NCBI GenBank assembly: GCA_964187785.1
Contig: OZ076417.1
Location: forward strand, 52,452,001 to 52,516,000
Direction of reading: 5' to 3'
DNA length: 64,000 nucleotides
Source: Amphiscolops sp. MND2022
Lineage: Eukaryota
Shown: positions 13,130-51,334 of the stretch, piece after piece
Position numbering within the stretch: position 1 is the stretch's first letter
Layout: the number at the start of each line of letters is the position of its first letter
Program-made: the position numbers and the translations under genes
The notes under the pieces: model-generated
Seen by the model: only the letters and a program-made list of their open reading frames with translations
What the model was told of the DNA's origin: nothing
The model's database searches: none

Positions 13130-13382
13130 TGTTATACGGTGATATACCGCGTCCGAATTATTCGGTTCAATGAAGTGCCAATCAAACTGAAAATGAACAT
13201 ATACCAACAAACTATAATTGTTCCTCTTTCTGTTTATACATATTTATATACATATGTACACTAGATTAGTTTCGTAAGGAACCATTGTTGTTAACGTAAA
13301 TTTACGATACAGTTTGGCATTAGAAAATAGAAATCAGTACTGACATTGTTCTATTATATCTCAACAAAGCAGAAATAGAACA
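13130..13382 (+). repeat. 5' LTR
   Basis: TGTTATACGG...AATAGAACA; identical to 18758-19010 except TACGATAC vs TACAATGC. Confidence 0.97.
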
Positions 13383-13395
13383 TGGCACAGTCAGC
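13383..13395 (+). promoter_or_regulatory. Primer binding site (TGGCACAGTCAGC; tRNA-Ser-like by inference)
   Basis: TGG immediately after the LTR's terminal CA; resembles the TGGCGCAGTCGG-type tRNA-Ser PBS. Confidence 0.65.
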
Positions 13396-13428
13396 TTCCT
13401 AATTTGATTTTATCGAAACAAAGAAACA

Positions 13429-16400
13429 ATGACACAAGAAGCAACACAAATCGAGGTGCCAAACTTCGAAGCAACAACAGACAGAAAGAAGATATTCACA
13501 CCGAAACAATGGCTTGAACGATTCCGGCAATGTACAAAACGGAAATACAAAACGGACATTGCGGAATTGATCCGAGGAGAAGACATGACGCAAGCAGACT
13601 GGGCCACAAAAGAAAACCAAGTACAAGACGATTTCATATGGGGTATTGGCCCAGAAGCTCTATACCAAATGACAAGAGCAGAGTACAAGACAGAACCGGA
13701 CAAAATCGCAATCAAAGAATTAATTCGGCTATTCAACGAGTATTTCTTAACGAAAAGAAATACATATAACAACCGGGGAGAATTTTTCTGGACTAAACAA
13801 ACAGAATCCGAAACACCAGAAGACTTCTGGCGAAGACTGATAGAAATCGAAAAAGAATGCAACTTCGAAAGCATAACAGCCGAAGAATTACTCATTTCCA
13901 AATTTATGACCGCAATTACGGACAAGAAACTCCGAGACAAATTAATGAAAGAAAAGAAACTCGAGATGAAAAAAGCGATAAAAATGATCAAGCAAAACAC
14001 ATACGAGAAGAAAAACAACAAAAACACAATACCGGAAGCACTAATATCAAACCGAGAAAAAGAGATTAAAGAAGAACCGATACAGAGAATGGACAAATTT
14101 AACACACGACCGAGAAATAAATTCAACAATAACAGACCATGTAGATTCTGCAATGCACCGAACTGGAACCAATCACACAAATGCCCAGCATTAGATCAGA
14201 CATGCAATAATTGCGGAAAGAAGGGCCACTTCGCCCGGGCATGCAGACAAAAAGTTTATCACAAACGCAAAATACGGAATGTAACCGAGAACGAAGCCTC
14301 AACAATTGATGAAGAAAGCGACGAATCAGAATCGAGTATCTACAGAATTGAAAGAATAAACAGAATCGTGGACAAAAACAAATATTTAACAACGACAGTG
14401 AAAATCAACGGAACGGAGAAAGAATTTATAATAGACACCGGATCACCAATATCAATAATGCCGGCGGATAAAACAATAGTGAAAGATACCGAAGTCCAAA
14501 AAGTGAGACACCGGTACCAAGATGTAAACAAGAACGAAGTAAAATTCCGGGGAAAGATACCGGTAGACATCGAATATGAGAACAACAAACAAAAGATGCA
14601 ACTAATAATTACCGAACGAAATGACATAACAACACTACTTGGAATGGACTGGTTAAAGAAATTCAAATTAACAATCGGCAACATCCGATTGGACGATAAC
14701 AACCAATCAGAAAAGAAACAGATCGTAGAGAAATTTCTGGACTTGTTCAAGAATAACACAACCATGAAAGATGCTGAAATAAATATACAATTGAAACCGG
14801 GACATTATCCGGTTAAACAAAAAGCAAGACCGATTCCTCTTCATCTACAAGAAGCAGTCGGAAAAGAAATTGAAAAATTAACGAAATCCGGACACTTGGA
14901 AAGAGTGAAACAAGTAGATGAAGACTGTTTTGTGTCACCGGTAGTGATAACTGTGAAAAACGATAAATCGGTAAAAATAGCACTTGATTCACGAAAACTG
15001 AATGACAGTTGCATCAAAGTCCGACCTCACATGCCGAACATGGAAGAACTGCTGAACCAAATTTCGGTGGAGATAACAAAAGACCGAACGAAAGAATTAA
15101 TGACGTCAAAAATAGATCTTGATTTTGCATACGGTCAAATGATGTTATCGGAAGAAACAAGCAGACAATGTGTATTTGCAATTACCGGGAGAAATTTTAG
15201 CGGCTACTACCGATTTAAAAAAGGATTCTACGGATTAGCCGACATACCCACAATTTTTCAGGAAAAAATTGATCGAACACTGGAATAATGTACACCCGCA
15301 TGGTTAGACGATATTATAGTTGTAACACGGGGAGACCGAAAAGATCACGAAAAGGAACTGTTCGATGTACTGAAGAAATTCGAAGATGCCAGTTATAGAG
15401 CAAGTGAGAAGAAATCCGAATTCTTTCAAAACAAAATGAAATGGCTCGGACATGAAATAGACGAAGACGAAATAAAACCAAACAAAGAAAAAGTCAAAGC
15501 CATACTGGATTTGAAACACCCGGAAAACCCGAAGCAATTAAAATCGTTTTTCGGGGCAATACAGTACCTAGCAAAAATCCTACCGAGGCTGTCAGAAAGA
15601 ACCGACAAATTACGAAAACTACTGAAGAAAAATACAGAATGGAAATGGGAAACGGAACAACAAAATGATTTCGAAATGATCAAAAAAATGCTCACCGAAG
15701 AACCGGCATTAGCACACTACGCAAAAGACAAAGACAACATTGTATCAACCGACGCAAGCAGAACCGGTCTCGGAATAACATTATGGCAAAAACAAGCAGA
15801 TGGAGAATTAAAACTGATAGCGTTCGGCAGTAGATTCCTTAATGACAGCGAAAAGAATTATTCGATCGGAGAACTTGAATTATTAGCAGTTGTATGGGGA
15901 TTAGAAAAATTCCGTTTTTACTTATACGGGAAAAAGGTGTTTTTATACACCGATCACCAAGCATTAGAACCCCTAATTAAACGAAATAGATGTAACAAAC
16001 ATTACAGCGCAAGACTAACCAGATGGTTAGACCGGCTAGCACATTTTGATATCTCAATACAACATATAGCCGGAAGCAACTTGAAATTCACGGACTATTT
16101 AAGCCGCAATCCAGTAGAGGGCGCCACGACCGAAAACACATACGATGAACAATACGTAATAAATACTCTCACGGAACAAGCCGAATTGAATTTGAAATAC
16201 GGAAGAGTTTTTATAAACCAATTACAGCACGCACCGAACGCAAAAATTACACCCGACTGTGAATTGAGCGGCCAATCAGAAACGAATAGAACATTCGAGA
16301 AAAACCGACACGTGAACAAAACAAACGAACGAACGGAAACCAGTCCAAATAGCGACGCGATAGAATTCAAACGCCAAGAAACTTTACCATTACATAATCA

Positions 16401-18624
16401 TTTGAAACCAGCAACAGCATCAATTGAAAAAGAAATTGACCGCGATTACTTTCATTGGGGCGCAACTGCCGAAATCATGCAAATTATACAAAGGAGAGAA
16501 AAGAGTCCGGAAACCCGAAGATTAGTGGAGAGAAGGCTAGGGATCGCTAGACCCGGCACAATGAGAAGAAGATATGACCAGAATGCCCAAGGAACAATCT
16601 TTGTCCCATCCCGACCAAACGAAAGAAGTAGGGAAGAAATTGCCGAAATAGACGGACAATTGATACAACGGGCAAACAGGTTGGGAGGAGGATACCAACC
16701 CCTACAAACAATTAGAGAAGAACAGGAACAAATCCCGATGGAAGAACAATTGCCGGAAGAACAATCAAATGACCCGGAGAGTGAAGGAGAAAGCCAAATC
16801 ATACGCGGGGACAACCTACCAATTGTTGATCTAAAGAACTACAACACGGAAGGAAAAGAGGCGCACTACGTGCAAATCAATCAAATAATCGGAATGGTCA
16901 CCGAAGTAAAGAAAGTCACCGAAGAAACAATTAAGAAAGCGGAAATGGATTTCATGCTGGACCTGAAAAGCTTAATTGCAAAATCGGCAACAGACGCCGA
17001 ACTAAACCGGGTAAAACTAGCATTAACAAGAGAAGACCGCAGCATGGCACCCGAACATTATCGACAAGAATTCGAAAACATCTCAACAAGATGGGGACTA
17101 ACTTTCATAAACGACAAAATAATTGTACCAACCGAACTCCGAAAGAAACTAATGAATACCTTACACTTCGGACATGCGGGAACCACCAAAATGGCAGCGG
17201 AAGCAAAAATCGTTTGGTGGCCAAACATCATCAAAGACATCGAAGAAAAAGTCAAAAATTGTGTAGCCTGCTTATCATCCTGTAAGAATTTAAAATATCA
17301 ATTACCGAAAAACGAAAGCAGAAAATCAAAAACACTTACCGAACCGGGACAAGAAATTCAAATCGATTTTACCGGAAAATTACACAATAAAATATTGAAC
17401 GGGAAGAACCAGCTACTAATTGCGGTAGATAGATTTAGTAAATGGCCGACCGTAAAAATTTGCAAAACATCCGAAACAAAGGAAGTAATTAACTTCCTAA
17501 AACAAAACCTTAACTTGTACGGAATACCGGAAAAAATTAAATCGGATAAAGGCGGAGCATTCATTTCAAAAGACTACATTGAATTCTTTAAATCGAAAAA
17601 CATTGAAATAGAATACAGCACACCGAGAATACATACCGGTACGGGAGCAGTAGAACGCGCTATACAAACCATGAAGAACTTAATAGTGGCTAATTTAGAA
17701 GACAATTTATGCCTGACCGAATGTGTAAACAGAGCATTAAAAGTAATGCGATTTACAATACACACCGTATTAAAATTAACGCCATTCGAACTACTCCACG
17801 GTAGAAAGCCGCGAACCGAATTAACCAATCTGGTTAAAGACGGTAAATCATTTCTCTCTGATTGGACGGAACTATCTGTTTCAGCTGAAAGAAAGCCAAA
17901 AATCCCAATCTATGTATCGAGGGATGAAGAGGGGGATGTAACAAATTACCTGGTCATGGCAAAAACCAAAGCCGAGGAAAAGGCGGTGGACAAACAACCG
18001 AAAAAGAAACATTCGGTTAGTGAATATCCCTTTGAATTTGTAGGAAAAAACTACAATAGAAAATCACTAGAAGGAAAATTTCAAAAGAAAATTCAAACCG
18101 CGGTAAGCGGAATCGAACATACCGTAAACACCGAAAGTGGAAGAATAATTCACCGAAAACACATTTCGGGACCAATTGTATTTCAGACCGAAAAGAAGAA
18201 AGAACGGGCACCGCAAATCGGAGACAAAATTACACCGAAGAATCGACACTGTCTCCGAGGCGTCGACGGGAAATACATTCAGTGGAATGAAATACTCCGC
18301 GATATACTGAATGGAAAATTGAAAATCATACAAAACCGGACACATAAATACGAATCGGAATCAGAAAGCGAGGAGGGTGAAATTGACGAGGAAAGCGATT
18401 TCGAGATGGAAAATCCGGATACGTCCGAAAGAAACGGGTACAAGCCGATCAACACTAATCCCGAAGACGAATTTAGACTACACACTGACGGTGAGATACC
18501 TATCGGTGAGAATGAAAATAAATTTCTAGAAACCGAAAAATCACCTGTTAGAAGGTCAAGCCGAAAATGTAGTCAACCAAATTTGTACGGGGGAGTACGA
18601 TATACAAAAAACTTTTGGTTATAA
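13429..18624 (+). pseudogene. gag-pol polyprotein (about 1731 codons, one frame) interrupted by a single in-frame TAA at 15286-15288
   Basis: ORFs 13429-15288 and 15436-18624 are in the same frame and the gap is open. Motifs: zinc knuckle CNNCGKKGHFARAC, protease IDTGS, RT ALDSRKLN and WLDD (15301-15312), RNase H TDAS/ELE/TDH, integrase H-H-C-C plus IDF/SDKG/VER. Confidence 0.95.
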
Positions 18625-18745
18625 AAAAATGATCTGTTTCAGGAAATAACCAAAGTAGTTCAGAACCAGCACTACCGAAACCAGCAGATTTCCAAAGAGA
18701 GATGAGCCCAATGCCGGGAACTTCGAAGATGTGAAAGAGAAGCCC

Positions 18746-18757
18746 AGAAGGGGGGAA
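18746..18757 (+). promoter_or_regulatory. Polypurine tract
   Basis: AGAAGGGGGGAA directly before the 3' LTR. Confidence 0.9.
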
Positions 18758-19010
18758 TGTTATACGGTGATATACCGCGTCCGAATTATTCGGTTCAATG
18801 AAGTGCCAATCAAACTGAAAATGAACATATACCAACAAACTATAATTGTTCCTCTTTCTGTTTATACATATTTATATACATATGTACACTAGATTAGTTT
18901 CGTAAGGAACCATTGTTGTTAACGTAAATTTACAATGCAGTTTGGCATTAGAAAATAGAAATCAGTACTGACATTGTTCTATTATATCTCAACAAAGCAG
19001 AAATAGAACA
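18758..19010 (+). repeat. 3' LTR
   Basis: 253 bp, TG...CA, followed by TSD GGTAT. Confidence 0.97.
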
Positions 19011-29829: not shown

Positions 29830-32800
29830 GACTAGTAGACGAGTTGACACCAGAATCCAGCAGCATCCACGCCAGCAATCCGCTCGCAAGCAACTTGGAG
29901 CATTGGAATTGACGCACTGAAAACGTCAAGAACTAGACCAGAGCGTGTTTTCAGAAACCATACCTGACAACTTGCTGAATGCTGAACAAAACGCAGAAAT
30001 CGAACAGGCAAACATGCTGGAATTCGCACCAGCTTCATTAGACAGTGATAATCCGGTAGATAGTGCTGCCGCGGACCCCTGTAGCATCTGGCCTCTGCTG
30101 CATGGTACTTTGGACAGTTTGGAATTTGGCCTAACTCTAATGCAAGACTAGCCACCGAGCAAATACCAATGAATGGGTACAGCAAGCGAGTACAAGTGTA
30201 ACCTCTGGAGAAGCTTCTTCCGCACTAGGCACAAGCGTGGACGGGTCCCGTGATTCCAGTATTCAGCACTAGCAGAAGTCCATTCCTGGACATACATGAA
30301 CGAAACCATAGAAAAAGAATAAGATACCGAGTACAGTTCGAGCTAAGCTGTGCTGTAATATTGGAACAGATACCATGACTTATATGTTATCATTTGATTC
30401 CTTTTCCAGACGCATTTCGACCACCGGAGACTTTTACTCCGCAGCCAGCGGACTGATGAAAAACAACTCGGAAATCAAACGGCACAGTCCACTAGCACAC
30501 AGAGAAAATTTCACACTAAAAGAAACCTACACATGGTAACTGAAATAGAAGCGCCAAAGTCTGAAACTCTCAGAACATTGCAAAAGCAAGCATTAGCTGA
30601 AGCAATTACAACCACAATGTCTTAGGTTTCAAACCGCTGTTGGCGGCTAAAGAAACCAAAAACAAGCCATTTCTGATCATGGTAAGCGTGATGGCACCAT
30701 TGACGGTTGGATGATGTTGATGAAAGCCACACGCGAAAGTCGCACCTTCAGACAGAGCTTGTACCATTGTAGAATTCTTAGAGAATGAGGCTAGAGACTA
30801 CATCCCGAACAAATCTGAAGCGGAGCGAGACATTGATGAGAAAATATTTGCACTACAAGCGCGCCGAATCAGCAGGGATCGAGCAAGATCCATATACATC
30901 AGCACGCGCAACCAGACTACAAGCAGTACCTGGACGCACTAGAAGGGCTACGCATTTAAAGCTTCTCAAACGAAAATGTAGCCGGGCGACGTTGTGAAGT
31001 CATGCAAAACTCACAGCAACTATCTTAACAGTCAATGGCTTATCGACAACCACCATCAAGAGCTTGCTTCAATTGTTGCGAACCTTCACACTTTGAGGCA
31101 GGTCGTCCATTGAAAGACAGAGCAAGGAAACCACTGCAACTACAAGTCAACGCATGCCATACCAACCAATCCGGCAGCTGGGCATGCCCTTCCAATCCGA
31201 ACGGCCTGACCAACGACATCTTCCCGGCAACTACCAGTGCAAGGAACGGTGGCATTTTGCATCAACTGTGGAGGCAGCGGTCACTCGGCACCCGATTGTA
31301 TGCTGCCGGTGAGTTTAAGGCAAGACGATCAGGTCAGAGCGGCATGGTATGCCATTGTCACCATTCCGACAAACACGACTGACTCAGACGATCAATTAAG
31401 AGTGATTTCCATAGTGTAAGCAGGTTGCCCATTCCGTCCAGTAAGTATAACCATTCGAGAAAAACGAATACTGATGATGCTAGATACTGCGGCACCTGAT
31501 TGCAACCTTACTTTAAATTTATTCACTTGCTGCTATCAGCAGAACAAAAGTTACGTCTCAATCTGACATGATCTTCATTGAAAGAACTATTTCGAAAAAC
31601 GAAGCCCCAAATAACATCAAGACCATTTCCCCACTTAATAAGAAACGACGAGACTAAAATGGTTTTAATTGAAAAAGTGAAAACAATGGCGCCAGTTGCA
31701 GTAACCATTAACGTCGACGGCGTCGACATGAAGTTTGACGCGATAATGGTCCTGGAAGGACACTTTCCGCAAGGCCTATACTGGGCAAAGCAAGAATTGA
31801 GGTGCTACAACATAGAGGTTCTGGACACTCAAGGGAAAGCTCAGATTGATGAGTGGGCCTCTCTTGTAGTTACATTCAGTACTACTCTCCAAAAGCGAAT
31901 ACCACTGTCCGGCATAATCAACGCAGAGCCAAGACTCTCCATCCTCTCTCTCAGGGCGTACCAAAAAATTGCTTCTGCACATGTTTTTAGTCTCCTACCA
32001 AACGACGAGGAACTCTACGAAGGATGCATTTCCGCTCCCTAGGATAGATGTGAGTCTTCATTGAATATGGAACGCGAAAGTATTCACCAGCATCGATTTA
32101 GCGTTGGCCCTCTGACAGATACTTCTGAAGAGGCGCAATCGAGGTCAAACTGCCATTGGGTATGCGCGCGGCTCATTTGAATGGCAAAACATGCCCTTGG
32201 GGCTATGCAATGCATTATCCACTTTCCAAAGGTAGATTACTAGGGAACTTCAAACGATCAAGAGCGACTTGGAATGTCGTGGTAACCTATATCGACAACA
32301 TAGTCATCGCAACTGAGACAATTGAGGATCACCTGGAGATGATTAGAGAAGTTTTCGAGTATCTCACAGATGCAGGTTTCAAAATGCGCGCTGAGAATTG
32401 CGATTCCATGCTCATGGAAACCAATAACCTAGAGCGAGTAGTTTCAGGAGAAGGCATCATTTGGGACCCGGAAGATGTTTGCAAATTCCAGGACTGGACG
32501 TCCCCGAGAAAAACGGACGTAACATAGAGGTTTTTGGGGTCTGCAAACTACTTTCGAGACTTTATCCCGTTCCACGCTGCAAAAGTGCAACATATACAAG
32601 AGCTTTTGAAACACAATCAACATTTTTATTGGAACGCAAAACATCAAGATGCATTCAATTCGGTGAGGCAAGCGTTAGTTGATGACAGGGCTTTGATAGC
32701 GCCAAACGATTTTTCGTATTAGACACGGACGCTAGCGCAGTTGCAATAGCTGGAATCCGGCACCACCCAGGGCAACATCACAATGCAAAGACCATCGTGC

Positions 32801-35500
32801 GTTCTATTGTGTCCGGCAGTAAATCACTAACGTGAACACAACTTTAAAACTACCAAAACTATGCTTTGAAATTGGAAACATACGCTGTCGTCTACTTTAT
32901 CAAACTTTCCATTCATTCCTTGTATGTTGAGAGTTCACGCTTCGTGTGGACAATCAGGCCCTTTCATGGCTAAAACGGTATTCCATGGAACAAGCCATGA
33001 TTGGACGCTGGATAGCACGTCTTGATCACTATCACTTTATTAGCTTGATTCATCTTGATGTCCCAGAATTACGAAAACTTCAACAATCGTGCCATACATC
33101 GGTAAGCACGGAAGGTTTCTGCCAAGTCATCCAGAGCTTCCAGTGGAAGCTCGAGCGCAACTCCCCGTACTGTACCTTTTGAGGAAATAGCCAAACAATA
33201 ACTGTCAGACGATCAATCCGAGAATAACACGCCTTGGTACCTGGGCGGAATTTCAGTAGGAAACACCTCAACAACAAGTGGGGACGACAGGCCAATTTCC
33301 ATTCTAAGCGTGACGAAAAAGGTGCCGCCACCACGTCTAGACACCACCAAGCGCAACTACTCAGCGTTGCGCAAAGTGCCCGCTATGTGTGATGAACAAC
33401 CCGACGTACTCAGGCTATTATGGACCGAATTGCACGACACCATCGTTCAACCATTGGCGGACTCCGAAACCTACATTTAGTACAAAAGAGAAATATTCAC
33501 CATCTAGCGTTGAAAAAAAGTTGATGAACAACGAGCAACTGAGTGACGCTCTATCCCCTGACGACGTCCAGGACTTTACCAAGTGGACGTCAACAAACAA
33601 AAAAAGAAGGACCGAATATTGATGAACCCAGATGACATCTTTTGTCTCAACTACGTGCAATGCACGGGAGACCGTGTATGATTTTCATACAACAGCTGTG
33701 ATTTTTTCAGAGGGCATGACGAGTCAGGATACCAGGGCGTAGGAAAAGTACTGGCGACGATACAGGAAAAACACACCTGGCCAGGATTCAACGAGATGTA
33801 GTTAACGACATCAATCACTGTTTAATTGGTCAACAGACCGAATATCCCGCTGGGAACCCCTGTTGTTCTCTACAAATCTTCAACAGTAGCAATTTTAATC
33901 ACTTAGTTCGATTTGATTACTTGAATTCCTGCAAAACCATGACCGGGCACACCGGTCTGTTAGTCAGTATTGATCATTTTATGACTTTTGTCGAAGCAAT
34001 CACGTGTGCTCACGACAAGTAGGATGCATTGACGACTGCAAAAATCACACTACCAAGTTTTCCAGGCATGGTACCTCAGCTAGGATGCAATCAGACAAAG
34101 CCACCAACTTTGCTGCAGAAATACCGCAAGAGCTCACGATATCCTCACATGCCACCAAAGTGACTTCGACCCTGCTCGCCCCAGAGGTAATGGCTTGGTA
34201 GAAAGACAGTACAGGACTTTACTAACACTGCTCAGAGTTTACACTTCTCGCGGGATGCAAGATTCGACGAGCTCATTGACGGAATTGGGGGGCATACAAT
34301 TCCACAATACAATTGACAAAAAAGTCACTTTACCTTCTCCAGCATGAAGTTGAGAAATCAACTCCGGTGTTCTTGATTTACCCTGAATTCGCAGCGCCAG
34401 CATTTGAGTCAAAAGAAGATATTATAAAACACCTGTTAGCGAGGCAACGATAAAATCACGAGCTTGTTCTTAGAAATACACACCAAGTTCTGTCACATTA
34501 TACCAAGGGTGGTACAAGCATCCTTTTTCGCGCTTGGCGTGTCCCTCACAAAGTAGCCGATGTACTGAAAAACGGCCGACATTACGTACTGGATACTGGT
34601 CAAAAGGTTCGTTTTGAGCGCTTGCTGTAACCTGTTCCCGCACCTTGGGACTGGATAGCGAACCACACCTTTTGGGTTGGACCAAAATGTGGCCATTATC
34701 GCGGACCCGGAAGGGGACCACCGTGGAGAGGAAGGGAATGAAAAATCAGCATCCGATATATCTCCTGATTCTTTCCTGCCGGAACAATAGCCAGAGGCAT
34801 CACTCCAATTGGAATCAACTAGGCCAGTCCCACCTCGCACAATCCAAACTCGCATTCAGACAGCCCTAAAGCAAGGAGTCTCACGTAGGCGGTTTATTCA
34901 TTTTAGATCTCAGTGTGAGTCAGGTCAGGTGATGATTGAACAACCGACTGTAGAACCGCAGCTATCCATGGTCTTCTCTGAACTGGATAACTTAGAACCA
35001 CTGTTTACTAATTCTTATACCATCACTAACGGGAACGTCGGACCCGTTATCGAACTCGTCGCTCACCGACACTCTCAATAAAATACCACTTTATTGACCC
35101 TGTGCGCTATGGACCCTGTAAGAAATTGACAGTAGAAACCCAAGAGCCGGCCGAAATCCCGCACTGTCCCTAACATTAGGTTGATACAAACAATAGGGGT
35201 AGACCCAAGTCGTAGGAGAGAAAGCACTACTACGCCAAGCAGAGCAACAGCGACTTCCAATAAATCAACCACTCGAGCTCGAGCCCGGAGAGGTTGAAGA
35301 AGTCGAATACAAACCCGAGCTCAATCTAAAACCTTAGAACGAGCAATGACATTGACAAAAAATTCCTGAAAAACCTCACAAAACAAACAAGATCAGGAAG
35401 AACGATCATCGCAAGCCCAACGTCATCAAATGATGACTAACCAGGCACCACGATGCCGATGTGGAATCTGTGGTTCCCTTAACTATAGTTGCGTCAACCT
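29830..35500 (+). mobile_element. Old, heavily decayed Ty3/gypsy gag-pol relic
   Basis: Zinc knuckles (CFNCCEPSH near 31065; CINCGGSGHSAPDC near 31258), protease MLDTA near 31480, RT VVTYIDNIVI near 32290, RNase H DTDASAVAIA near 32720 and VDNQALSWL near 32947, integrase RMQSDKATNF near 34082. Many stops; no LTR pair found. Confidence 0.85.
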
Positions 35501-36097
35501 AGTCGCTGAGAAAGCACTGAATCAGAGATTGACCCGGGAGTGGGCACACCCAGCCAAGGAACGAGCAAGTTGCATTTCCTAGGTTACCCCCAGTATAAAA
35601 TCTTAGCCAGACAGGCCAAAAGGCATGATCTACCAGCAATAGGTCATATAGTCTTAACAGTAGAAATGACCATGTCAGGTGTTAAACCAGGAAACGTTTC
35701 ACCACTTGAAGGAACCTTGACAGTAATGTATAGCACGTCACACTTAGATTGCCCCAACTGTCGTTTCAGAAATGGACACAACACGAAAAGAGCGGACTAG
35801 GGTTCATGCTAGCTGCAATCATTTCCACCACTCCCACCATCGATGGTGTTTGGAAACATTGATCCCGAGGAAGGAAAAAAGTGGAAATGATAGGCTGCAT
35901 CACTTCAGGTTAACTCGGGGAACAAAACTGCGTAACCGCCCCTCGGTAGACATGCCAACTAACTAAAGGTTGGTGGCTCTTAGTCACCCCTCTCGAGAAA
36001 ACTTCACCAGTGTTGCCCGGGACAAGGGTAATTTGCCTAGAAAACCTGCGCACACTCATAGAGTTAGACAAGACAATTGGTTTCCATTTAGCAGACA

Positions 36098-39000
36098 TTG
36101 TCTTGCAGACCTTGTATGTCGTATGACAATACATACATATTACAAGCACATGGTACTGTGGTAGTATGTTGTTCGGTGGACCTAACGTCCTACTCAGCGA
36201 TGACGCGTTATATAATTCGAGAATACGGACAAGAAAGCGCTTTTAAGCAGCGACCAGTGGTGGGAACAGCTATGCACCTAGCCAGATTATCAAGCGCACA
36301 CTGGAACAACGACACGTTTTTATTGTTCACCAGAGTCTCTAATACCCGTCCTTTGTTGCATGTTATACTGCATCTCTGTTTTATCGACTTAGTAAATTCA
36401 CTTACGACAATTCGAATCCTGCAAGTCTACTTCCGAATATACGACACGAAAAATTCAAATAAAATCTTACCGACGTGGTACGCCGTGTTGAGAGACCATT
36501 TTATCGATTCGAACATCGACGTCATCCTTCACGACGGAGTATATGTGCCAATAGCATTATTCAACGAAAAAACAGTTAGCGCTCAAAACACTTCGCATTA
36601 GCATTAGCAAAGCCTCTAAGGGAGGAAGTCTCTTAGACCAATGGCTTTCCCTTTTTTTTTTCATCGAGAATTGAGCCCTTTCTTAATGAGAACTGATTTT
36701 CGGTTTTTATTGCTCCATTTCTGACAACCGTAAACCCCGTGACCAGATCATTCAACAGCAATTGATTCATCAGAAGGTGCTACCTTCATCCTTATCGATG
36801 GATCCATCGTCAAGGCCCCGACCGTGTACCCCTCGCAATGTGCAAGTCATTCTTCCTGTTCGTTTATAAACGTTCGATTATATAAACCCAGAACCAGTTC
36901 AGTTCTGTTGCCCGTTGGGACGAATGGATAAACTATCCCTAGTTCAGAAAAAGCTTAGTACTGGTTTGACACCCAGGCTTTTTGCAGGAATAACAATGCT
37001 AATAGCAACGATTTTCTTCCGAGAGAAACATTCAGACTTAAAACTGACTCTGTCAAGTGGCATATGAACTTTCCAACGCACAGCAGAATTCCACAAAAAA
37101 AAGTGTGGCGCTGCCAAAATCTAACTCACACCTTTAACGACCGGATGTCGCATATCACTTTGGTGAGCCTGCGAGGCCACCCATGGAACAAGAATGGTCA
37201 CTTAGATTTCAAACAACACCACAACAACTAATAATGGTTGACCTCCCGCCCCTAAGCACAACTGGCACCATGCGTACTTTCACGCCCCATACCAATACCA
37301 CTTCAAGTGCGTGGTGCCTATCAGGCCCCCCGTCTATGGCGACTCCCCCAAACCCCTAATAGGAGTAAGATCAATCATGCAACCAGAACCCACTCTCATG
37401 TTACGTTCTTCCTTCGAGGGAACAGATGCGAAAGTACATGCCCAAGAAACGATTCATCCTGCAGTGGGCGACTTGATGGTAATCGTTGAAGTAATTCAGG
37501 ATTCGTTCGATGCACTGGCACCGTCCACCTCTAGAGCAAAGAATCCAGTGAAAAATTCAAAGTATTTACTTGGCTCTCAACAAGATCCAACGAAGAAATG
37601 AAAAAGCGCTTCAATAAATTTGAGGCAACATTACAGCCGGTATCCAACAAAAGGAGAGCAGGATAGGCGAACCCTACCGGCACTAGACAAGCGGGCCTTT
37701 CACCAACACAACATGTTGCTGGGATGGTGCTTTTGGCCAAAGAACTATTCTCGCAGACCGCGATCTTACAACTAGACATCACCACTAGGGACGCGCTGCG
37801 TCTGCAGGCAAAATTCCCCCAAGAGAACGAACACGACTACCTCCGATATGCGAATGCAAACTGACTTTGTACCCCTGAGGGTTCAGAAGAGAGGAACGCA
37901 CCCACGGATGAATGAATGACGACCGAAGTGACAGCGTTTGTGGAAGCAATGCGCCAAATTGTCAAAACCGAGAACTTCTCGGTTTTGACAATTTGGCGCA
38001 TTGCTTCCACAAACGCTGTCACTTCGGTCGTCCTTCATTCATCCGTGGGTGCGTTCCTCTCTGAACCCTCAGGGGTACAAAGACTGTTTGCATTCGCATA
38101 TCGGAGGTAGTCGTGTTCGTTCTAGAAGAAACCCCCACGCAGGAGTATATTTTGTCTCCCCTCCCGAATACAACTACCTACCGAATGCCCTACAATATTT
38201 CTGTCACCAGGATTTCGAAGCGCCCTTCTCAAGAGAGTTGCTTGTTTACATCTTTGCGCCAAACCTGAGAATAAGTTCGTCCTCTTTAGCGTCCGTAGGC
38301 ACTTTCATACCTTGCAATCATTGCAGGAGCATCGAAAGCCTTGCAGGCATACACTGGTTACAAAGTAATTTCAGAGCTGTTAACACACGACAGAACCGCG
38401 TATGACTACGGCATGCACGTGGCACATCGCAGTTTTGATGGCAATGGCGAGTGACAAGTCTCTTACCCCACAGAAGGCTCTGTTCGAGGTTGCCTTCACG
38501 AGTGGATTGAAGGTTCTGCCTTCGGGTGGGTAAAGCTAGCATTCCCGGCAGAGCCGTCACCAGAGTATGAGTGCTACTGTTGAGTGTCAACTACGGTTGC
38601 TCAGTAGACGATGCCTGGAACTAAAGCCTCAAGAATCCTGACAACAGGGGGGACTCAAAAACTACCTGCACAGTCCTTAAATGAGAATCGGGGTATGATC
38701 CCATCTCAACTTCTTCGGAAGTGGCAATTTTCTGTCGAAACACATCATTGTCTTGAAGTCAGTGAACTTGTTGGTGAAAGGTACTCTCTTCGTAGAGATG
38801 CTTTCCGGGACTAGGTCGATCTGGAAGGTGGGAAACCCTTATAAACGAACCCTCTTCACTATCAGATCTTCCTTAGTCAATTGTGGTTGTATTTGTAATT
38901 GTAAGTGTCTGATTGAAGTGCAAAAGAGCTCAGTGACATTTGGGTCGATGCCACCACTACTGATTGTGCTATAGATGCTTTTCTGGTATCGCGGTCTGGT

Positions 39001-41757: not shown

Positions 41758-43204
41758 TGTGATAATCCTCTTCTGAAGCTAAGATTTCGTTTTCTAAGTT
41801 TACTTCGTTTTGATAAAATGATTTGGCTGGATGCTTTAATTGTTTCATGTCTGAGGCTTTGAAAGGATCTCATTTTTGGATCCCAATGATCTTGCGTTTT
41901 GCATTGCATTTGTTTCCCGTTCCTTCTATATTCCAACTTTGCTCAGCGAAAATCAATCTTGGTGCAAGAAATATCTGAATTGTTGATTGAAACTCTCCCA
42001 AATCAAAGTATTCATTTCGAAACAAAAGTTGATGATTTATGTAAGGGAAGCTACTGTTCAGTGTGATCGTTTTATTTCAAGTGAAGGAGATATTTACAGC
42101 ACTTGTTATCCTTAAAATTGTCAAGCATGACATCCCTCTTTTGAGATGTCATATACCCTGGTGAGAAACATAAATAGAGTTACGTCAAATGATGTCTTCC
42201 TATTTATAGTATTCAAATTCAATGCTACATGACATTCGAAATAACATATCTGAATGAAATTAAGGGTCGTTACTGCAAATGTACTATACCGTATAGACGG
42301 CATACTGAAAAACGTATAGTGACGCATATTCGTCACTTGTAAATATTCGTCACTAAATTTTCACTAAATATTCGTCACTATGTTTAGTGGTGTAAGTTAT
42401 ATGTCAACGTATAGTAGCAACACTGAAAGACGCATAATACCGCACATACACAATCCTACAATGCGTACAACGCCGCATAATGAAAAACGTATAATGCCGC
42501 ATATACACAATACTGGAAAACGTATGATACCGCATAATCAAAAACGTATAATGTCGTATTCATCATAGGATAAATTCCGCATGACAACGTATGGTCAGCG
42601 GCTGGTTCAGCATAGTGACGTATAGTCGCCAAACCTCGTTCCGCATAGTGACGTATACCCAATCTCGCTGATTCCGCATAGTGACGTATAGTCACCACAC
42701 CTCGTTCCGCATAGTGACGTATAGCCAATCTTGCTGATTCCGCATAGTGACGTATAGTCGTCACACCTCGTTACGCATAGTGACGTATAGCCAATCCTGC
42801 TGATTCCGCATAGTGACGTTTAGTCGGTGGCTGGAAACTGCACAATAACGTTTTGTCGGCGGCTGAAAACCGCATAGTAACGTATAGTTTACTCAAGGTC
42901 GACATATTAGCATGGAATGAGCTCTCACAAACTGCGTGAACAAATATTATGAGTCATAATAATAACTAATGATGAATGAAAACTACGCTTCCGATATTTG
43001 AAATGTATAATAATGTAAAACAGAACCCATTTTGAAATAAGAACAACCAATGTGAAATTACATGACTAATGTAACAAGCTGGGGAATTAGTTTATGGTCG
43101 TTGCTGACCATCCAAAATTCATAATCTTCTGGAAATCGGGTTTGGCAGTTCTAGTTTTCTTAGGAATTGCCCAATGGCAACAGCACAACAGTGGGGTTGT
43201 GACA
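41758..43204 (-). repeat. 3' LTR
   Basis: Direct repeat of 44611-46098 (high identity by eye, with one extra deletion of about 60 bp near 41870). Confidence 0.9.
42600..42830 (+). repeat. 33-bp alternating A/B tandem array inside the LTR
   Basis: Constant CCGCATAGTGACGTATAG followed alternately by TCGCCACACCTCGTT or CCAATCTTGCTGATT. Confidence 0.9.
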
Positions 43205-44610: not shown

Positions 44611-46098
44611 TGTGATAATACTATTCTGAAGCTAGTATTTCGTCTTCTAAGTTCAGTTCGTTTTGATACAATGATTTGGCTGGATGCTTTAATTGTTTCA
44701 TATCTGAGGCCTTGAGGGGATTTGCTTCTTCTTCTGATTCTGGATTTTTGTTATTAGATGCGCGAACTCCTATAGACTGTTCATTTTTGGATCCCAAAGA
44801 TTTTGCGTTTTGCATTGCATTTGTTTCCCGTTCCTTCTATATTCCAACTTTGCTCAAGCGAAAATCAATCTTGGTGCAAGAAATATTTGAATTGTTGATT
44901 GAAACTCTCCCAAATCAAAGTATTCATTTCGAAACAAAAGTTGATGATTTATGTAAGGGAAGCTACTGTTCAGTGTGATCGTTTTATTTCAAGTGAAGGA
45001 GATATTTACAGCACTTGTTATCCTTAAAATTGTCAAGCATGACATCCCTCTTTTGAGATGTCATATACCCTGGTGAGAAACATAAATAGAGTTACGTCAA
45101 ATGATGTCTTCCTATTTATAGTATTCAAATTCACTGCTACATGACATTCGAAATAACATATTTGAATGAAATTAAGGGTCGTTACTGCAAATGTACTATA
45201 CCGTATAGACGGCATACTGAAAAACGTATAGTGACGCATATTCGTCACTTGTAAGTATTCGTCACTAAATATTCACTAAATATTCGTCACTATGTTTAGT
45301 GGTGTAAGTTATATGTCAACGTATAGTAGCAACACTGAAATACGCATAATACCGCACATACACAATCCTACAATGCGTACAACGCCGCATAATGAAAAAC
45401 GTATAATGCCGCATATACACAATACTGGAAAACGTATGATACCGCATAATCAAAAACGTATAATGTCGTATTCATCATAGGATAAATTCCTCATGATAAC
45501 GTATGGTCAGCGGCTGATTCCGCCACACCTCGTTCCGCATAGTGACGTATAGCCAATCTTGCTGATTCTGCATAGTGACGTATAGTCGCCCCATCTCGTT
45601 CCGCATAGTGACGTAGAGCCAATCTTGCTGATTCGGCATGGTGACGTATAGTCGCCACACCTCGTTCCGCATAGTGACGTATAGCCAATCCTGTTGATTC
45701 CGCATAGTGACGTATAGTCGGTGGCTGAAAACTGCAAAATGACGTAATGTCAGCGGCTGAAAACCGCATAGTAACGTATAGATTACTCAAGGTCCACATA
45801 TTAGCATAGAATGAGCTCTCACAAACTGCGTGAACAAGTACTATGAGTCATAATAATAAGTGATGATGAATGAAAATTACGCTTCTGATATTTGAAATGT
45901 AAAAGAATGTAAAACAGAACCCAATTTGAAACAAGAATAACTAATGTGAAATTACATGACTAAAGTAAGAAGCTGGTGAATTAGTGTATAGTCGTTGCTG
46001 ACCATCTAAAATTCATAATCTTGTGGAAAGCGGATTTGGCAGTTCTAGGTTTCTTAGGAATTGCCCAATGGCACCAGCACAACATTGGGGTTGTGAAA
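44611..46098 (-). repeat. 5' LTR (terminal TG mutated to TT)
   Basis: Followed on the minus strand by PBS TGGTGACAGG; flanked by TSD CGAGT. Confidence 0.9.
45520..45725 (+). repeat. 33-bp alternating A/B tandem array inside the LTR (second copy)
   Basis: Same units as 42600-42830. Confidence 0.9.
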
Positions 46099-46720: not shown

Positions 46721-47848
46721 GAACCTCAGGGTCAAAGTCACTCACATTTTGATCAGCAGTACAAAGGTTTTTTGAGATTATCAAAAGTTATATCACATTG
46801 TTATGAGGAACTTTGGAGATTTTTGAACCTTTTTGAGCAATATCTCAGAAACCACTGGAGCAGAAAAACCTCATTAAATCATTTTTGCAAATTTTACACC
46901 TTTTTTTACTTTTTATAACTTTATAACAATTATTTTGAAAATGCTTTCTAAAAACTGAACAGCGAAAAAAATCTGTAAAAGCAATGGTTTTACGGAGTGA
47001 AAATTGAAAATTGTGCATTTTGTGATTATTTTGTGGTGTCAATTCTTCAATTCTTCAAAAAGGGCGTTTTCAGAAAAGTGGTAAAATCTAAGGTTAGAGA
47101 TCTGAACGAAAGGTACAAAGTTTTTCTCAAACACTTTTGGTAAGAACAGGTTAGGGAGATTTCTGTTAGCTATTAGCTTTTGTAGTTTTTGTGAAAATGG
47201 CGTTCAAATCGAAAGAACTGAATTTCAGACAGCGTTTTATGATAAGAAAAAAGGGTTTTAAGCAAAAAGGGTCCACCCTTAGGCTTTTTTGACAGTTTTC
47301 AATGTTTTTCAAGAATAGCATATGACTTCTCAGAATGGTTCTTGCTTTGGTTTTGTGGTTTCATATGGTGAAAGAAGAAGAAAAAGTTGATATTTTTTGA
47401 GGGTTCTCGTGATAATGAAAGCAAAAAAAATCTAATTAAGCCCAAAAGGTCTCAGTTTTTTTGATATAGTGGAAGAAGAATTTTTTCAAAAAAATCACTG
47501 ATGCTTTGAAGTTTTTTTTTGATTTTTGGGGGCTTTTATTGGGGCGCTTTTAGGTTGCCAACAAGTACTTTCGCATCACGCCAAGAGGTAATCAATGAAT
47601 TTCTAGGGACTTGGGTTTTGAAGGGAACTCTAAAAAATGGTTGAACGCAACATAAATTTCATTACAATCACGATCACATACCTCTAATACCCTGAATGCA
47701 GCAGAAAATGGAAGTGCTAGTAGTGTTTGGCGAAACAGTTTTTGAACAAAAACACAGCTTTTTGAGCCAAAAAACAACCAATGTTTTAAAAATATATATT
47801 TTCCATTCATTGCTATCACAATCGAAGGACACGTACATGAAATTTTAG

Positions 47849-48319
47849 GTTGCAGAATCTGAAGTCAGAAAATCTCCCCAAGATTACTATTATCACTACA
47901 CTACGACTTATGCAACGAGTGAAATCCAGAAAGATCAATATCTTAAGCAGTCGACGCCGCACTACAAAGCAAACATAGGCGAAGGCATTTATGTTACAAC
48001 ACTGGACCCATTCACCAACACTAGATTGCATCTTCGGAATGTCTTGTTCCTGGGAGGCAGCAGCCCTATCACCAAGAGTAAACTAGACTGCTACTTTGCC
48101 CTGAAGAAAAATGACGTAATGACTGCATGTTGCCTTGTGCAGCAGTACCCTAGAAGACCGAAATGTTTTCGACTGGTACCCCAAAACGGCAAATTGTATC
48201 TCAGTAAAACTTCACACTACAGCGGGCCCACAAACCTCACAGGAGACGAGTCTGATTCAGATTCGGATCGTTACTCTGATGGCGCCTACTACATTTCTGA
48301 CTCCGATTATTCTTTTTGA
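47849..48319 (+). CDS. Terminal exon encoding a putative HYD1-type ADP-ribosyltransferase (Tox-ART-HYD1-like) domain, 156 aa
   Basis: Stop-free frame after a TTTTAG acceptor: VAESEVRKSPQDYYYHYTTTYATSEIQKDQYLKQSTPHYKANIGEGIYVTTLDPF...SKLDCYFAL..., ending in an acidic D/S/Y tail. Carries HYT, GxGxYxTxLxP and KxDxYF motifs. The ORF track reports only the 3' part (48026-48319). Confidence 0.65.
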   Translation, partial: VAESEVRKSPQDYYYHYTTTYATSEIQKDQYLKQSTPHYKANIGEGIYVTTLDPFTNTRLHLRNVLFLGGSSPITKSKLDCYFALKKNDVMTACCLVQQYPRRPKCFRLVPQNGKLYLSKTSHYSGPTNLTGDESDSDSDRYSDGAYYISDSDYSF

Positions 48320-49279
48320 AGAAACTTGAAGTCATTTTAATTAATGACTTTGATAGTTCAACCCTTACTGACACAAATTTGAGCTCAAGATCTCTGAAGA
48401 CTTTTCAAAATTAGTAACTACTTGACTTTATCAGGGCCTCTCAAAAATGTTTTTGTTGAAGAAGTATGTCGATTACTTTTTTTCCTCAAACGAATATTCA
48501 ATATATTGTCGTCTACCCTAAAAGAATCACCAAGATATCCTTATTCTGACAGTTTTGACCGCATGTTGATTTTCAGGTCCAACTTGAAAAGAAACATCTG
48601 GTTAATATTGAGAATCTCTACCATTTAGATCTTGTCTTGCAACATTCAATGTTGCTTCGCACTTAAAGAAAGTTCAATATTTTGACGACCAATATGTTTA
48701 GGACTCGATCGAGCTAGAATTGTAGAATCGTAAAAATGGTAAACATTGTCCTGGAATCGAATAAATTTGACTTTTTATTCTACTAAATAATGAAATGCGT
48801 TGAAGTGTCAGTACGGGAATGCTCTATCATCAATGAAAAGCCCCGCATTGGCCAACCCTGGTAAAAACAATATTCCTCACGGATTGCAGATAAATGCTGA
48901 AAATTGAATGCTATTGGATGAGCCTGTTCTTTATATTCCAAAAACTTGGAGAAACGTCCACTTAAGCTTGAATTTTCAAGAAAAGAAACCGTTAATTTAA
49001 TTCTTAAGTATTTTTCAAACTAATGTTCAAGTTCAAGATCATCGAGTACTCATTCGCAATTTTTTTAGAAGAATTCTGTCAGGGATCTCTGTGAATCTGA
49101 CGCGCATAGTTCTTCAAAATGATTTCACCAGCGCAAATTTTTCAGATAATTCTATGCTGCAATGGGATGTTTAAATATTGTCCAGAAAAGACATATCACA
49201 AAGTTTGTCTTCTAGGCTGTCCCGCCTTTTCTTCCAATCAACGTCGTCAAGTTTGAACGTAAGGACTTTTTCAGTTGTG

Positions 49280-50025
49280 GACGAGCTCGGCAGAACAAAT
49301 TTGGCTTATACAGGGACGCGCCCACAACCAGGGTACCCATTTAGTAAGTCCGCGTCAGTGTCAGTAAAAAAAGTTGACTTCCAATTCGTAAGTTGGTCGG
49401 TAGTCATACATAGGTCAATAACTGAGCTACATTGACATCGTAAAAAGTTTTTTCACCATTGTTTAGTATGATCACCAGCTTGTTCTCGATATAATGCTCC
49501 AAAGTACAACCATTCTTGTTTGTTAGTGAATCTCCCCATAAAGTGCTTCTGGCATTCAGATCTCCAACAAAGAGAACTCCCTTCATGTTATTTTCTCTTG
49601 CAAAATCGATTGCACGTCCAAAAGTAATGATAAACTCCTCCATTTCGTTCACTTTCCTCGCTGGGGGTATGTAGGCGGTAGCAACAAGGTTGAATTGTTT
49701 GCAGTAATGTACAGCACAACAAATAGAGACGAACTTTTCATTTTCTAATTCTTGTATTTCACAGCAACTGGTGTCTTTCGACACTGACAGTGACACACCC
49801 GATGAATTTGTCCTCTACATCTCGAGAAAGTGCGGTAGTCCGTGAAAAAGTCTTCGGGTACTTGTTTCTTGGGATCGTTCAACGCAACAAAGTCAGGTTT
49901 CTGATCTTCGAGATATTTGTTCAGAATGGTTGTTTGGCATTTGAAAGTCCGGTTGGAGTTAGCTGCAGTACAATAATAGAGTTCCTGTTAGCCATTACTG
50001 ATATAGAACTCAAGTCTTTCATGTA
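49280..50025 (-). pseudogene. LINE ORF2 apurinic-like endonuclease domain (frameshifted, truncated)
   Basis: ATAYIPP, VLFVGDLNARSTLWGD, LNNGEKTF and SVIDL motifs. Confidence 0.9.
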
Positions 50026-50029
50026 AGTG

Positions 50030-51334
50030 CTTCGGAAGGGGAACGTTTCTTTGGTGATAGTCTTTCCTTGCATGGTTTAGGTAAGCTTCACAGTTGGGAT
50101 CGTTTGAAGCCTGTTTTGATTGGCAATTTGCACAAGTGGGTTCTTCTGAGTTACAGTCTCTAGTGCTGTGATTTCCTGCACATTTGCCACATTTCGGAGC
50201 GCTCTTGCACGTTTTGGCTATATGCCCAAAATTCTGGCAATTATAGCATCCGACAATTGGTATTTTTTCGTCTTCATTGAACTCATTTGCTCGAAACTAT
50301 TGATCGTTTAAAAAGATTCCACTTGTTACTGCTCTTTCCATGTCGTTGCGGTTGCGGAAATCAATTTTGACAGTATTTAACGTACTTTTGTCTTTTTTCA
50401 CAAATATACGAGCAGTAGCATCGTGGAAGATCTCTTGTAGTAGTTCAGTCATTTTGGAGTCCGTAAAAACATTTTCCTTTGCGTCGTCTTTAATGATAAC
50501 GGAGTGTTTCTTTTGCAGCTTTCGTGGTCTCCTACAAGTAGTTTCTGTGCCCAGGAAAGTTGATTTCCATGCTTCCTCATTTTCTTTGGATTTTTGGTGT
50601 GTCGCGAATTCCAAATTGATATGGCTCCTCGTTGTTCTGAATGCATACATCAATTTCTTTTTCGGGAATGCCTTGGAGAAAAATATAGAAAAATAGAAAA
50701 ATAGAGAAATCTCGCTCTATTGTTTCATTTTGGGTTATCGCATTCCTGTTGTTCCTGTTGATGCAACTGAGGCATAGGTTGATGTCGTTTTTTCCACTGC
50801 ACGTTTGACAAAGCTGATTTTTGGTACCACTCCGTGGGCGACTTTGTTGAGAGACGGAAGAAGCGCGGATAGATCTTTTGATAGCTTGAGAATTCTGTCA
50901 GTCGCTAAAGTAGTGGCATGTGTGGCGTTGTCTACTTTAAGTTCTGTAACAATGAGACTATCTTGATGTTGTTGACTCGATTCCAATAAAGCTTCTAACT
51001 TTTTGTCTAAAGATTCAAATGCTTTCGGCCTCGAGAACGTTTTCGCTGCAGGCAAACATTCCTTACAAAACCAAAGTATAGACTGGATTCTGTCAATTCC
51101 ATTAATGTTTTCTCCCGTTAGGTCAGAGCAATTGTGGTGGAACCAACCTTCGCAAGCGGCGCATTCGATGGCGCTAGTTCCTGTGGTAACTATGTTGTTA
51201 CATAGGCCCCAGGCGTCATTGTGTTGTTCAGTCAATGAAACGGTTCTATCTTTTTTGTTTTTGGAAGGCTTCTTGGCCAAGACGTGCGACTGCTGCTCCA
51301 AGATAATGAAACCTCGAAAGCTGCCGACGCACAC
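50030..51334 (-). pseudogene. LINE ORF1: PHD finger, coiled coil, RRM and CCHC knuckles; disrupted by a frameshift (tandem duplication near 50680-50710) and a stop at 50297
   Basis: PHD (W)GLC..IECAACEGWFHHNC..WFCKEC; RRM-like VKIDFRNRNDMERAV; knuckles CYNCQNFGHIAKTC and CGKCAGNHSTRDC, plus a degenerate CANC. Confidence 0.85.

Follow-up and report, generated by a model that had tools for sequence, protein, structure and literature searches.

A putative main coding exon of a small, tandemly expanded animal gene family related to the bacterial Tox-ART-HYD1 ADP-ribosyltransferase toxins

Bacterial Tox-ART-HYD1 toxins and the gene family in the window

In the searchable literature, Tox-ART-HYD1 is described solely as a bacterial T6SS or Rhs (interbacterial) toxin domain. 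One member has been characterised: Tre23, which forms the C-terminal toxin domain of Plu0353, an Rhs protein of Photorhabdus laumondii. Residues His8 and Tyr33 of Tre23 are required for toxicity, and the enzyme ADP-ribosylates helix 44 of the 23S rRNA (PMC8661411). The published HYD1 signature is H, [RK], [FY], [DE] (Zhang et al., 2012; PMC3482391). No eukaryotes were given for HYD1 by these authors, unlike Tox-ART-HYD2, which was reported to have passed from bacteria into eukaryotes such as fungi, choanoflagellates and cnidaria (Zhang et al., 2012; PMC3482391). Tox-ART-HYD2 is a sister family of H-Y-D toxin ADP-ribosyltransferases (ARTs) and has a different signature (H, D, GFY, W, R). Imm-My6CBD, the immunity partner of bacterial HYD1 toxins, is reported to have given rise to the cargo-binding domain of metazoan myosin VI (PMC3482391).

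In the current study, a region of the window (the whole 64 kb stretch of DNA that was analysed) was compared with these systems. With a probability of about 0.8, positions 47849..48319 are the main coding exon of a member of a small animal ART-fold gene family, homologous to Tox-ART-HYD1 and expanded in this genome, the window copy being derived from a tandem cluster of such genes. The window family and the bacterial toxins share a homologous domain of approximately 100–120 residues, with the YHYT motif that contains the histidine, an invariant G-x-G-x-Y-x-[TS]...P strand, and the [RK] and [FY] positions (K78 and Y82). Unlike Tox-ART-HYD1 and Tre23, the window family consists of stand-alone, spliced eukaryotic genes lacking any Rhs or PAAR delivery part, and in place of a polymorphic-toxin context there is a stand-alone two-exon gene on a retrotransposon-rich eukaryotic contig. 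The neighbouring ORFs that were tested gave no immunity-family match in searches of general scope rather than ones directed at Imm-My6CBD. The window protein also differs from the bacterial domain in having Lys at the D/E column of the signature, with a conserved D89 instead, and in extra insertions between the His and the Tyr and past the central strand.

In existing annotation, this spliced and tandemly expanded animal HYD1-like clade, with its altered catalytic signature, is represented solely by 'uncharacterized protein' entries from two acoel genomes. Should the proteins be active, they would be an example of a toxin domain domesticated within a bilaterian group that branched early, and would provide a small and tractable ART that might have RNA as its substrate.

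The exon and its reading frame

On the forward strand, 47849–48316 comprises 156 codons without a stop, closed by a TGA at 48317–48319, and the frame opens immediately behind a TTTTAG at 47843–47848. Translation bears out the stop-free frame that an earlier note on this DNA had placed behind this acceptor, and likewise the statement there that the in-frame ATG at 47837 is interrupted by a TAG (47846–47848). The mechanical list of ORFs has just a 97 aa ORF with a TTG start at this site, and thus overlooks the exon, as had been pointed out. The length of the frame could be due to chance, given 14 ORFs of at least 150 aa in the 64 kb window, and its reality therefore rests on homology, with homologs at E values down to 1e-64 and a match to Pfam family PF15633 at E 0.0013. 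On this basis 47849–48319 is predicted to be a genuine coding exon of an HYD1-like ART, equivalent to exon 2 of its sister genes.

The exon contains the entire ART-fold domain and an acidic tail. The ART-fold core (residues 13–130; 47885..48238, + strand) has predicted strands at residues 13–18, 46–50, 81–86, 94–100, 103–111 and 123–127 in the AlphaFold models. The Y-Y-H-Y-T motif lies at 47888..47902 (+), with the codon of H16 at 47894–47896, and is followed by the strand and loop G44-x-G46-x-Y48-x-T...P54 (47978..48010, +) and by K78, Y82, K86, K87 and D89 (48080..48115, +), which were assessed by their column shares in the family alignment. The motifs named in the earlier note lie where it had put them: YYYHYT is present, with the His codon as above, IGEGIYVTTLDP begins at 47975 and SKLDCYFAL at 48077. 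The Ser/Asp-rich C-terminal tail (48239..48316, +) is predicted to be disordered (pLDDT < 55). Its length varies between the paralogs, including between the window copy and L002, by in-frame differences. The earliest in-frame Met within the exon is residue 91, so that the ART domain is untranslatable from 47849–48319 alone.

Homologs, Pfam assignment and predicted fold

The window protein matches Pfam Tox-ART-HYD1 (PF15633) with 19.7 bits (E 0.0013), below the gathering cut-off of 25; the match spans residues 15–89 against profile positions 2–72 of 97 and is the sole Pfam match of this protein. Four of six paralog frames also match PF15633. A word-indexed search recovered five close homologs, with E values between 1e-19 and 1e-64, from a single ENA assembly (ERZ25074608). 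An exhaustive HMMER search of 1.84 billion representatives, with a query profile built from the window protein, P0002 and P0005, matched just 16 proteins. These include 'uncharacterized proteins' in RefSeq from two acoels, Convolutriloba macropyga and Symsagittifera roscoffensis, as well as a diatom transcript and a protein with a SAP domain. Six relatives (P0008, P0009, P0010, P0013, P0017 and P0018) exceed the PF15633 cut-off, at 25.5–36.2 bits. A profile of 16 family members brought in 17 more proteins, every one of them annotated PF15633 and several with Rhs-type N-termini. The identification as Tox-ART-HYD1 made in the earlier note therefore stands only in part where HMMER and Pfam are concerned: the window protein alone remains sub-threshold, and homology to HYD1 is established transitively, through relatives that pass the cut-off and through the PF15633 proteins that the family profile retrieves. 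No family member has a Pfam match to Tox-ART-HYD2, and an NCBIfam search of the window protein yielded only a chance repeat match.

The acoel relatives, C. macropyga XP_075261400.1 and XP_075252075.1 and S. roscoffensis XP_063717974.1, share a clade with the window protein (E 1e-12 to 1e-23 against the window profile). They are of the same size, also have a non-acidic residue at the D/E column, and conserve K87 and D89. In gene structure, too, they are similar to the window family: short exons encode the N-terminus, and the next exon begins shortly ahead of the HYT motif. Unlike the window protein, to which they are 32–35% identical, they have no acidic Ser/Asp tail, and their intron positions are near the window acceptor but not identical to it.

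AlphaFold2 models were built with family alignments. The 156-residue model has a pLDDT of 84.7 and a pTM of 0.77, with the tail disordered, while the 130-residue core reaches a pLDDT of 94.1 and a pTM of 0.88. When compared with the PDB by Foldseek, ADP-ribosyltransferase-superfamily proteins made up 49 of the best 50 matches. The neighbours are Agrobacterium 6b (probability 0.95–0.98), followed by Tpt1/KptA, CC0527, Tne2, exotoxin A (ExoA), PARP1 and cholix, with E-values all of 0.011 or worse and TM-scores of at most 0.52. These models support an ART fold (a split beta-sheet) that is remote from every solved structure; a comparison with the ART fold had been suggested at the outset, and the core does match ART folds almost solely, if weakly. 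Searches of PDB sequences with the window protein and two family profiles gave nothing significant.

The nearest solved structure is that of Agrobacterium 6b (PDB 3AQ2/3AQ3; RolB/RolC 'plast' family), with a TMq of 0.50–0.52. The tRNA 2'-phosphotransferase Tpt1/KptA follows with a TMq of 0.44–0.48, and the His of its HGT motif aligns with YHYT. Both of these and the window protein are minimal ART folds, but sequence identity is 8–15%, E is 0.01 or worse, and the R-H-R-R catalytic tetrad of Tpt1 is absent from the window protein. Membership of RolB_RolC (PF02027; cut-off 23 bits) was considered and rejected: the window protein has no match, and two of six paralogs together with P0006 reach only approximately 16 bits (E 0.0065–0.0097).

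Signature residues and possible activity

The family alignment comprised 16 bacterial-type HYD1 proteins, three of another eukaryote type and nine of the animal clade. H16, G44, G46, Y48 and P54 are invariant in all 25 members (25/25). The K78 column is R or K in 15 of 16 bacterial-type sequences and in each of the nine animal-clade sequences, and the Y82 column is Y or F in the same proportions (15/16 and 9/9). By column order, K78 and Y82 probably represent the [RK] and [FY] of the published HYD1 signature, and according to the family alignment H16 corresponds to the catalytic His8 of Tre23.

The conserved D/E column, at the end of the central strand, is acidic in 13/16 bacterial-type sequences but in only one of the nine from the animal clade; the other eight have N, H, R or K, and the window protein has Lys86. 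In the animal clade, K87 and D89 are both present in 9/9. The earlier note had read the H-Y-T, a GxGxYxTxxxP strand and a later acidic residue as the HYD1 signature. The His and the GxGxY..P elements of that reading hold, but the later acidic residue lacks support in that form: the column of D80, within SKLDCYFAL, is variable, and conservation of an acidic position fails in the window protein, where the D/E column of the family holds K86. Catalytic competence is consequently not assured, the column being non-acidic in eight of the nine animal-clade sequences.

Without the canonical acidic residue, the proteins of the animal clade, if not of the entire family, could be ART-fold pseudoenzymes, or could simply bind NAD+ or a nucleotide or hydrolyse NAD+. 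The basic or amide residues at the D/E column are in keeping with this, and the NADase Tne2 and the ART-like CC0527, whose function is not known, are among the structural neighbours of the window protein. Such a loss of transferase activity is a serious rival, which we nevertheless consider less likely than not. His16, Tyr48 and the Gly-rich strand are invariant, and coding constraint has been maintained in the family. D89 lies three residues past the missing acid, and its retention with K87 throughout the animal clade is what would be predicted if these proteins preserve an acidic group close by. Several H-Y-x PARP-type mono-transferases function without the glutamate.

An active enzyme remains the preferred interpretation. 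NAD+ binding is suggested by the intact His-Tyr pair together with the Gly-rich strand. The most likely activity would be ADP-ribosylation of a macromolecule, which by analogy with the modification of 23S rRNA by Tre23 may be RNA. Family proteins would be of approximately 130–170 residues, with an ART fold and no secretion signal. The second exon would provide the entire enzyme domain and the acidic disordered tail, and the encoded ART-fold protein, small and with a disordered tail rich in Ser and Asp, would reside in the cytoplasm or nucleus, acting as an intracellular NAD+-binding enzyme through the conserved His16 and Tyr48. In the sister genes, the four residues of the first exon followed by the unaltered second exon yield no signal peptide.

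The tandem expansion, fast evolution, variable tails and moderate dN/dS of the family would fit a role in conflict or immunity. A more specific proposal is that an acoel-like lineage domesticated an ART toxin domain of the ribosome-targeting type from bacteria, that the carboxylate moved to Asp89, and that the protein ADP-ribosylates nucleic acid or translation components of invaders, which may be viruses, transposons or symbionts. This proposal is speculative and, taken as a whole, improbable. If true, it would reveal a so far undescribed family of innate-immunity effectors in animals, derived from a bacterial toxin.

Gene structure in the tandem cluster

Four close paralogs are located on one 155.7 kb contig of ERZ25074608 (ctg182380), on the same strand and 11–27 kb apart, and constitute a tandem cluster. 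All five close copies (the window copy and the four sisters) open the same frame from the same TTTTAG, the four sisters directly behind the same ...CACGTACATGAcTTTTAG. The 3' end of the intron in the window (47770..47848, +), with its TTTTAG acceptor (47843–47848), is conserved in the four sisters at approximately 80% identity over roughly 60–110 bp, and TTTTAG followed by GT is invariant.

Upstream of each cluster gene there is a common block of approximately 750 bp. At its end are a strongly conserved ATG and three further codons, and behind these a donor, either GTAAGT or GTGAGT. Each of the four genes has this first-exon pattern upstream once and once only. Introns of 606, 2460, 2335 and 7220 bp would follow from it, all in phase 0 relative to the acceptor. 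A first exon of four codons (Met and three residues, with a GTAAGT-type donor) would thus be joined in phase 0 to the TTTTAG acceptor in the cluster genes. The acoel RefSeq models have two short 5' exons, with the acceptor shortly ahead of the HYT motif. Together, the first exons of the four sisters and the introns of the acoel models uphold the proposal of an intron-containing eukaryotic gene, and of TTTTAG as a real, conserved splice acceptor, which the earlier note had assumed.

Codons 1–12 behind the acceptor differ between the window copy and L004 by four changes, all of them synonymous (4/4); translation must therefore enter the exon from upstream. Only in L001 does the second exon (L001 9980–10513) have an ATG as its codon 8; the window copy and two sisters have AAA there, and L002 has CAA. 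To judge from its sequence, the L001 domain could be translated whole from this ATG even without the first exon.

Besides the cluster, the same genome carries at least two more divergent family copies. The distant copies L005 and L008 have a pyrimidine-rich acceptor ending in ...CAG at the same place, 12 codons ahead of the [YF]Y[YF]H motif in L005 and 15 codons ahead in L008. A different structure is found on a third contig (ERZ25074608 ctg185118), where P0010, encoded at L009, is a single uninterrupted ORF of 133 aa with its own ATG (L009 10001–10402). P0010 matches PF15633 with 36.2 bits and is 42% identical to the S. roscoffensis protein.

Origin of the window copy

A 7189 bp stretch of the window is 100% identical to contig ctg184121_97x of ERZ25074608, so the window and the cluster share one genome, though on separate contigs. 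To judge by the nearest named relatives of the family, this genome is probably that of an acoel-like marine animal. An origin in different species, which the lack of high-identity repeats had suggested, is ruled out by this identity. Neighbour-joining of the exon sequences places the window copy together with L001 and L002 (82% bootstrap). Being nested within the cluster, it descends from a cluster gene that possessed a first exon. It differs from its nearest sister by 12% at the nucleotide level.

The duplicated segment that can be traced comprises approximately 1.1 kb of intron, the exon and approximately 0.8 kb of 3' flank, without the first exon or the promoter block. A segment at 46734..47208 (+) is collinear with the L002 intron (L002 8983–9355), and upstream of it detectable homology to L002 ends. 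The 3' flank at 48320..49114 (+), a candidate 3' UTR, is shared with L002; the regions aligned to L002 are window 47815–48639 and 48775–49114, at 73–81% identity.

Patterns (up to three mismatches) and nhmmer profiles (--max) drawn from the alignment of the four sister genes did not find the first exon or the promoter block in the 47.8 kb upstream of the exon. The earlier note had been unable to find an upstream exon, and this is still the case after pattern and nhmmer searches across the window. Comparison of the 6–10 kb upstream with the four sister loci by blastn and tblastx revealed no common coding block. Several candidates were rejected. The splice sites of a mini-exon candidate of 34 nt at 47554–47587 are not retained in L001. 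An nhmmer match at 47019–47148 (E 2.5e-7), considered as a promoter or first-exon block, is also found twice in L002 and is therefore probably a dispersed repeat. None of three in-phase ATG...GTRAGT mini-ORFs upstream is supported, and two of them lie inside a direct-repeat pair. Trans-splicing affects 30% of S. roscoffensis genes, and the published leader is without an ATG (PMC9911081). A start codon supplied by a spliced leader was rejected for this reason, and the S. roscoffensis leader has no match within the window.

The duplicate as traced, lacking first exon and promoter, leaves two readings: either a 5' exon that has gone unrecognised drives the copy, or the copy is 5'-truncated and yet intact. 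It could thus be a dead partial duplicate, an orphan second exon that no longer gives rise to a translatable mRNA and of which the frame is open only for lack of time. We place the odds of this slightly below even. The first exon and the block of approximately 750 bp lie 0.6–7.2 kb upstream in 4/4 cluster genes and are absent from the 47.8 kb upstream in the window, the homology to L002 ends within the intron at approximately 46.7 kb, a 1.2 kb direct-repeat pair of up to 99% identity lies just upstream, and the exon has no Met before residue 91; all of this favours a relic. Selection on the window branch is borderline (P=0.054 in a weak test against neutrality, from 8 synonymous and 12 non-synonymous changes).

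Against this, the 156 codons have acquired no stop or frame-breaking indel despite the 12% divergence from the nearest sister, and the tail differs from that of L002 by an in-frame change of length. The ratio of 8:12 on the window branch equals the 8 synonymous and 13 non-synonymous changes on the branch of the intact sister L002, and pairwise dN/dS among the five copies is 0.4–0.6, with one pair at 0.87. By this weak test there is no sign of relaxed constraint in the window copy. The acceptor and the proximal intron are also conserved. The first exon may be situated more than 47.8 kb away, or may differ in sequence; the model of a C. macropyga homolog has an intron of 24 kb. The window copy itself is of smaller significance than the family, as it may be a promoterless duplicate.

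Surrounding sequence

The exon lies in transposon-rich surroundings, as the earlier note had described: the window contains a Ty3/gypsy-type element, a LINE fragment and a second decayed retroelement. These surroundings, together with the sub-threshold Pfam score of the window protein alone, would suit a chance ORF, an ORF borne by a transposon or bacterial contamination, none of which would be a host gene. Such an origin is very improbable, given homologs at E 1e-64 with divergence biased towards synonymous changes. Every copy in the cluster comes with a first exon and an intron of its own, and terminal repeats that would mark a mobile unit are absent. The contigs that bear the family are of 130–430 kb with 97–128x coverage and carry retrotransposons, and bacterial promoter and terminator signals in the window are at chance level. 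A coding exon of a host gene family is thus retained as the explanation.

The Ty3/gypsy-type LTR retrotransposon occupies window positions 13130–19010 and has LTRs of 253 bp that are 99.2% identical, indicating a young insertion. Its gag-protease and RNase H-integrase regions are on two separate long ORFs (one break), and neither ORF has a match to the reverse-transcriptase family RVT_1 at E<=0.001. The direct-repeat pair consists of two copies of approximately 1.2 kb (41758–42926 and 44611–45820), 87–99% identical with a spacing of approximately 2.9 kb, situated 2–6 kb upstream of the ART exon. Each copy contains 33/57/66-nt tandem arrays. The two copies may be LTR-like repeats belonging to a small non-autonomous element or, alternatively, the result of a local duplication. 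A GC-richer stretch at approximately 31000–37000 (GC 0.44–0.46, as against 0.36–0.40 elsewhere) was considered as a host gene; it contains pieces of zinc-knuckle and RT-like ORFs in several frames and is instead another decayed retroelement.

Just downstream of the ART exon, two ORFs are present on the opposite strand. One is a fragment of a LINE-type endonuclease ORF (Exo_endo_phos_2; 49404–49796, –) and the other a PHD-finger ORF (50735–51334, –). A PHD_Pygo ORF is also located approximately 3 kb downstream of the paralog L001, on the same strand as L001.
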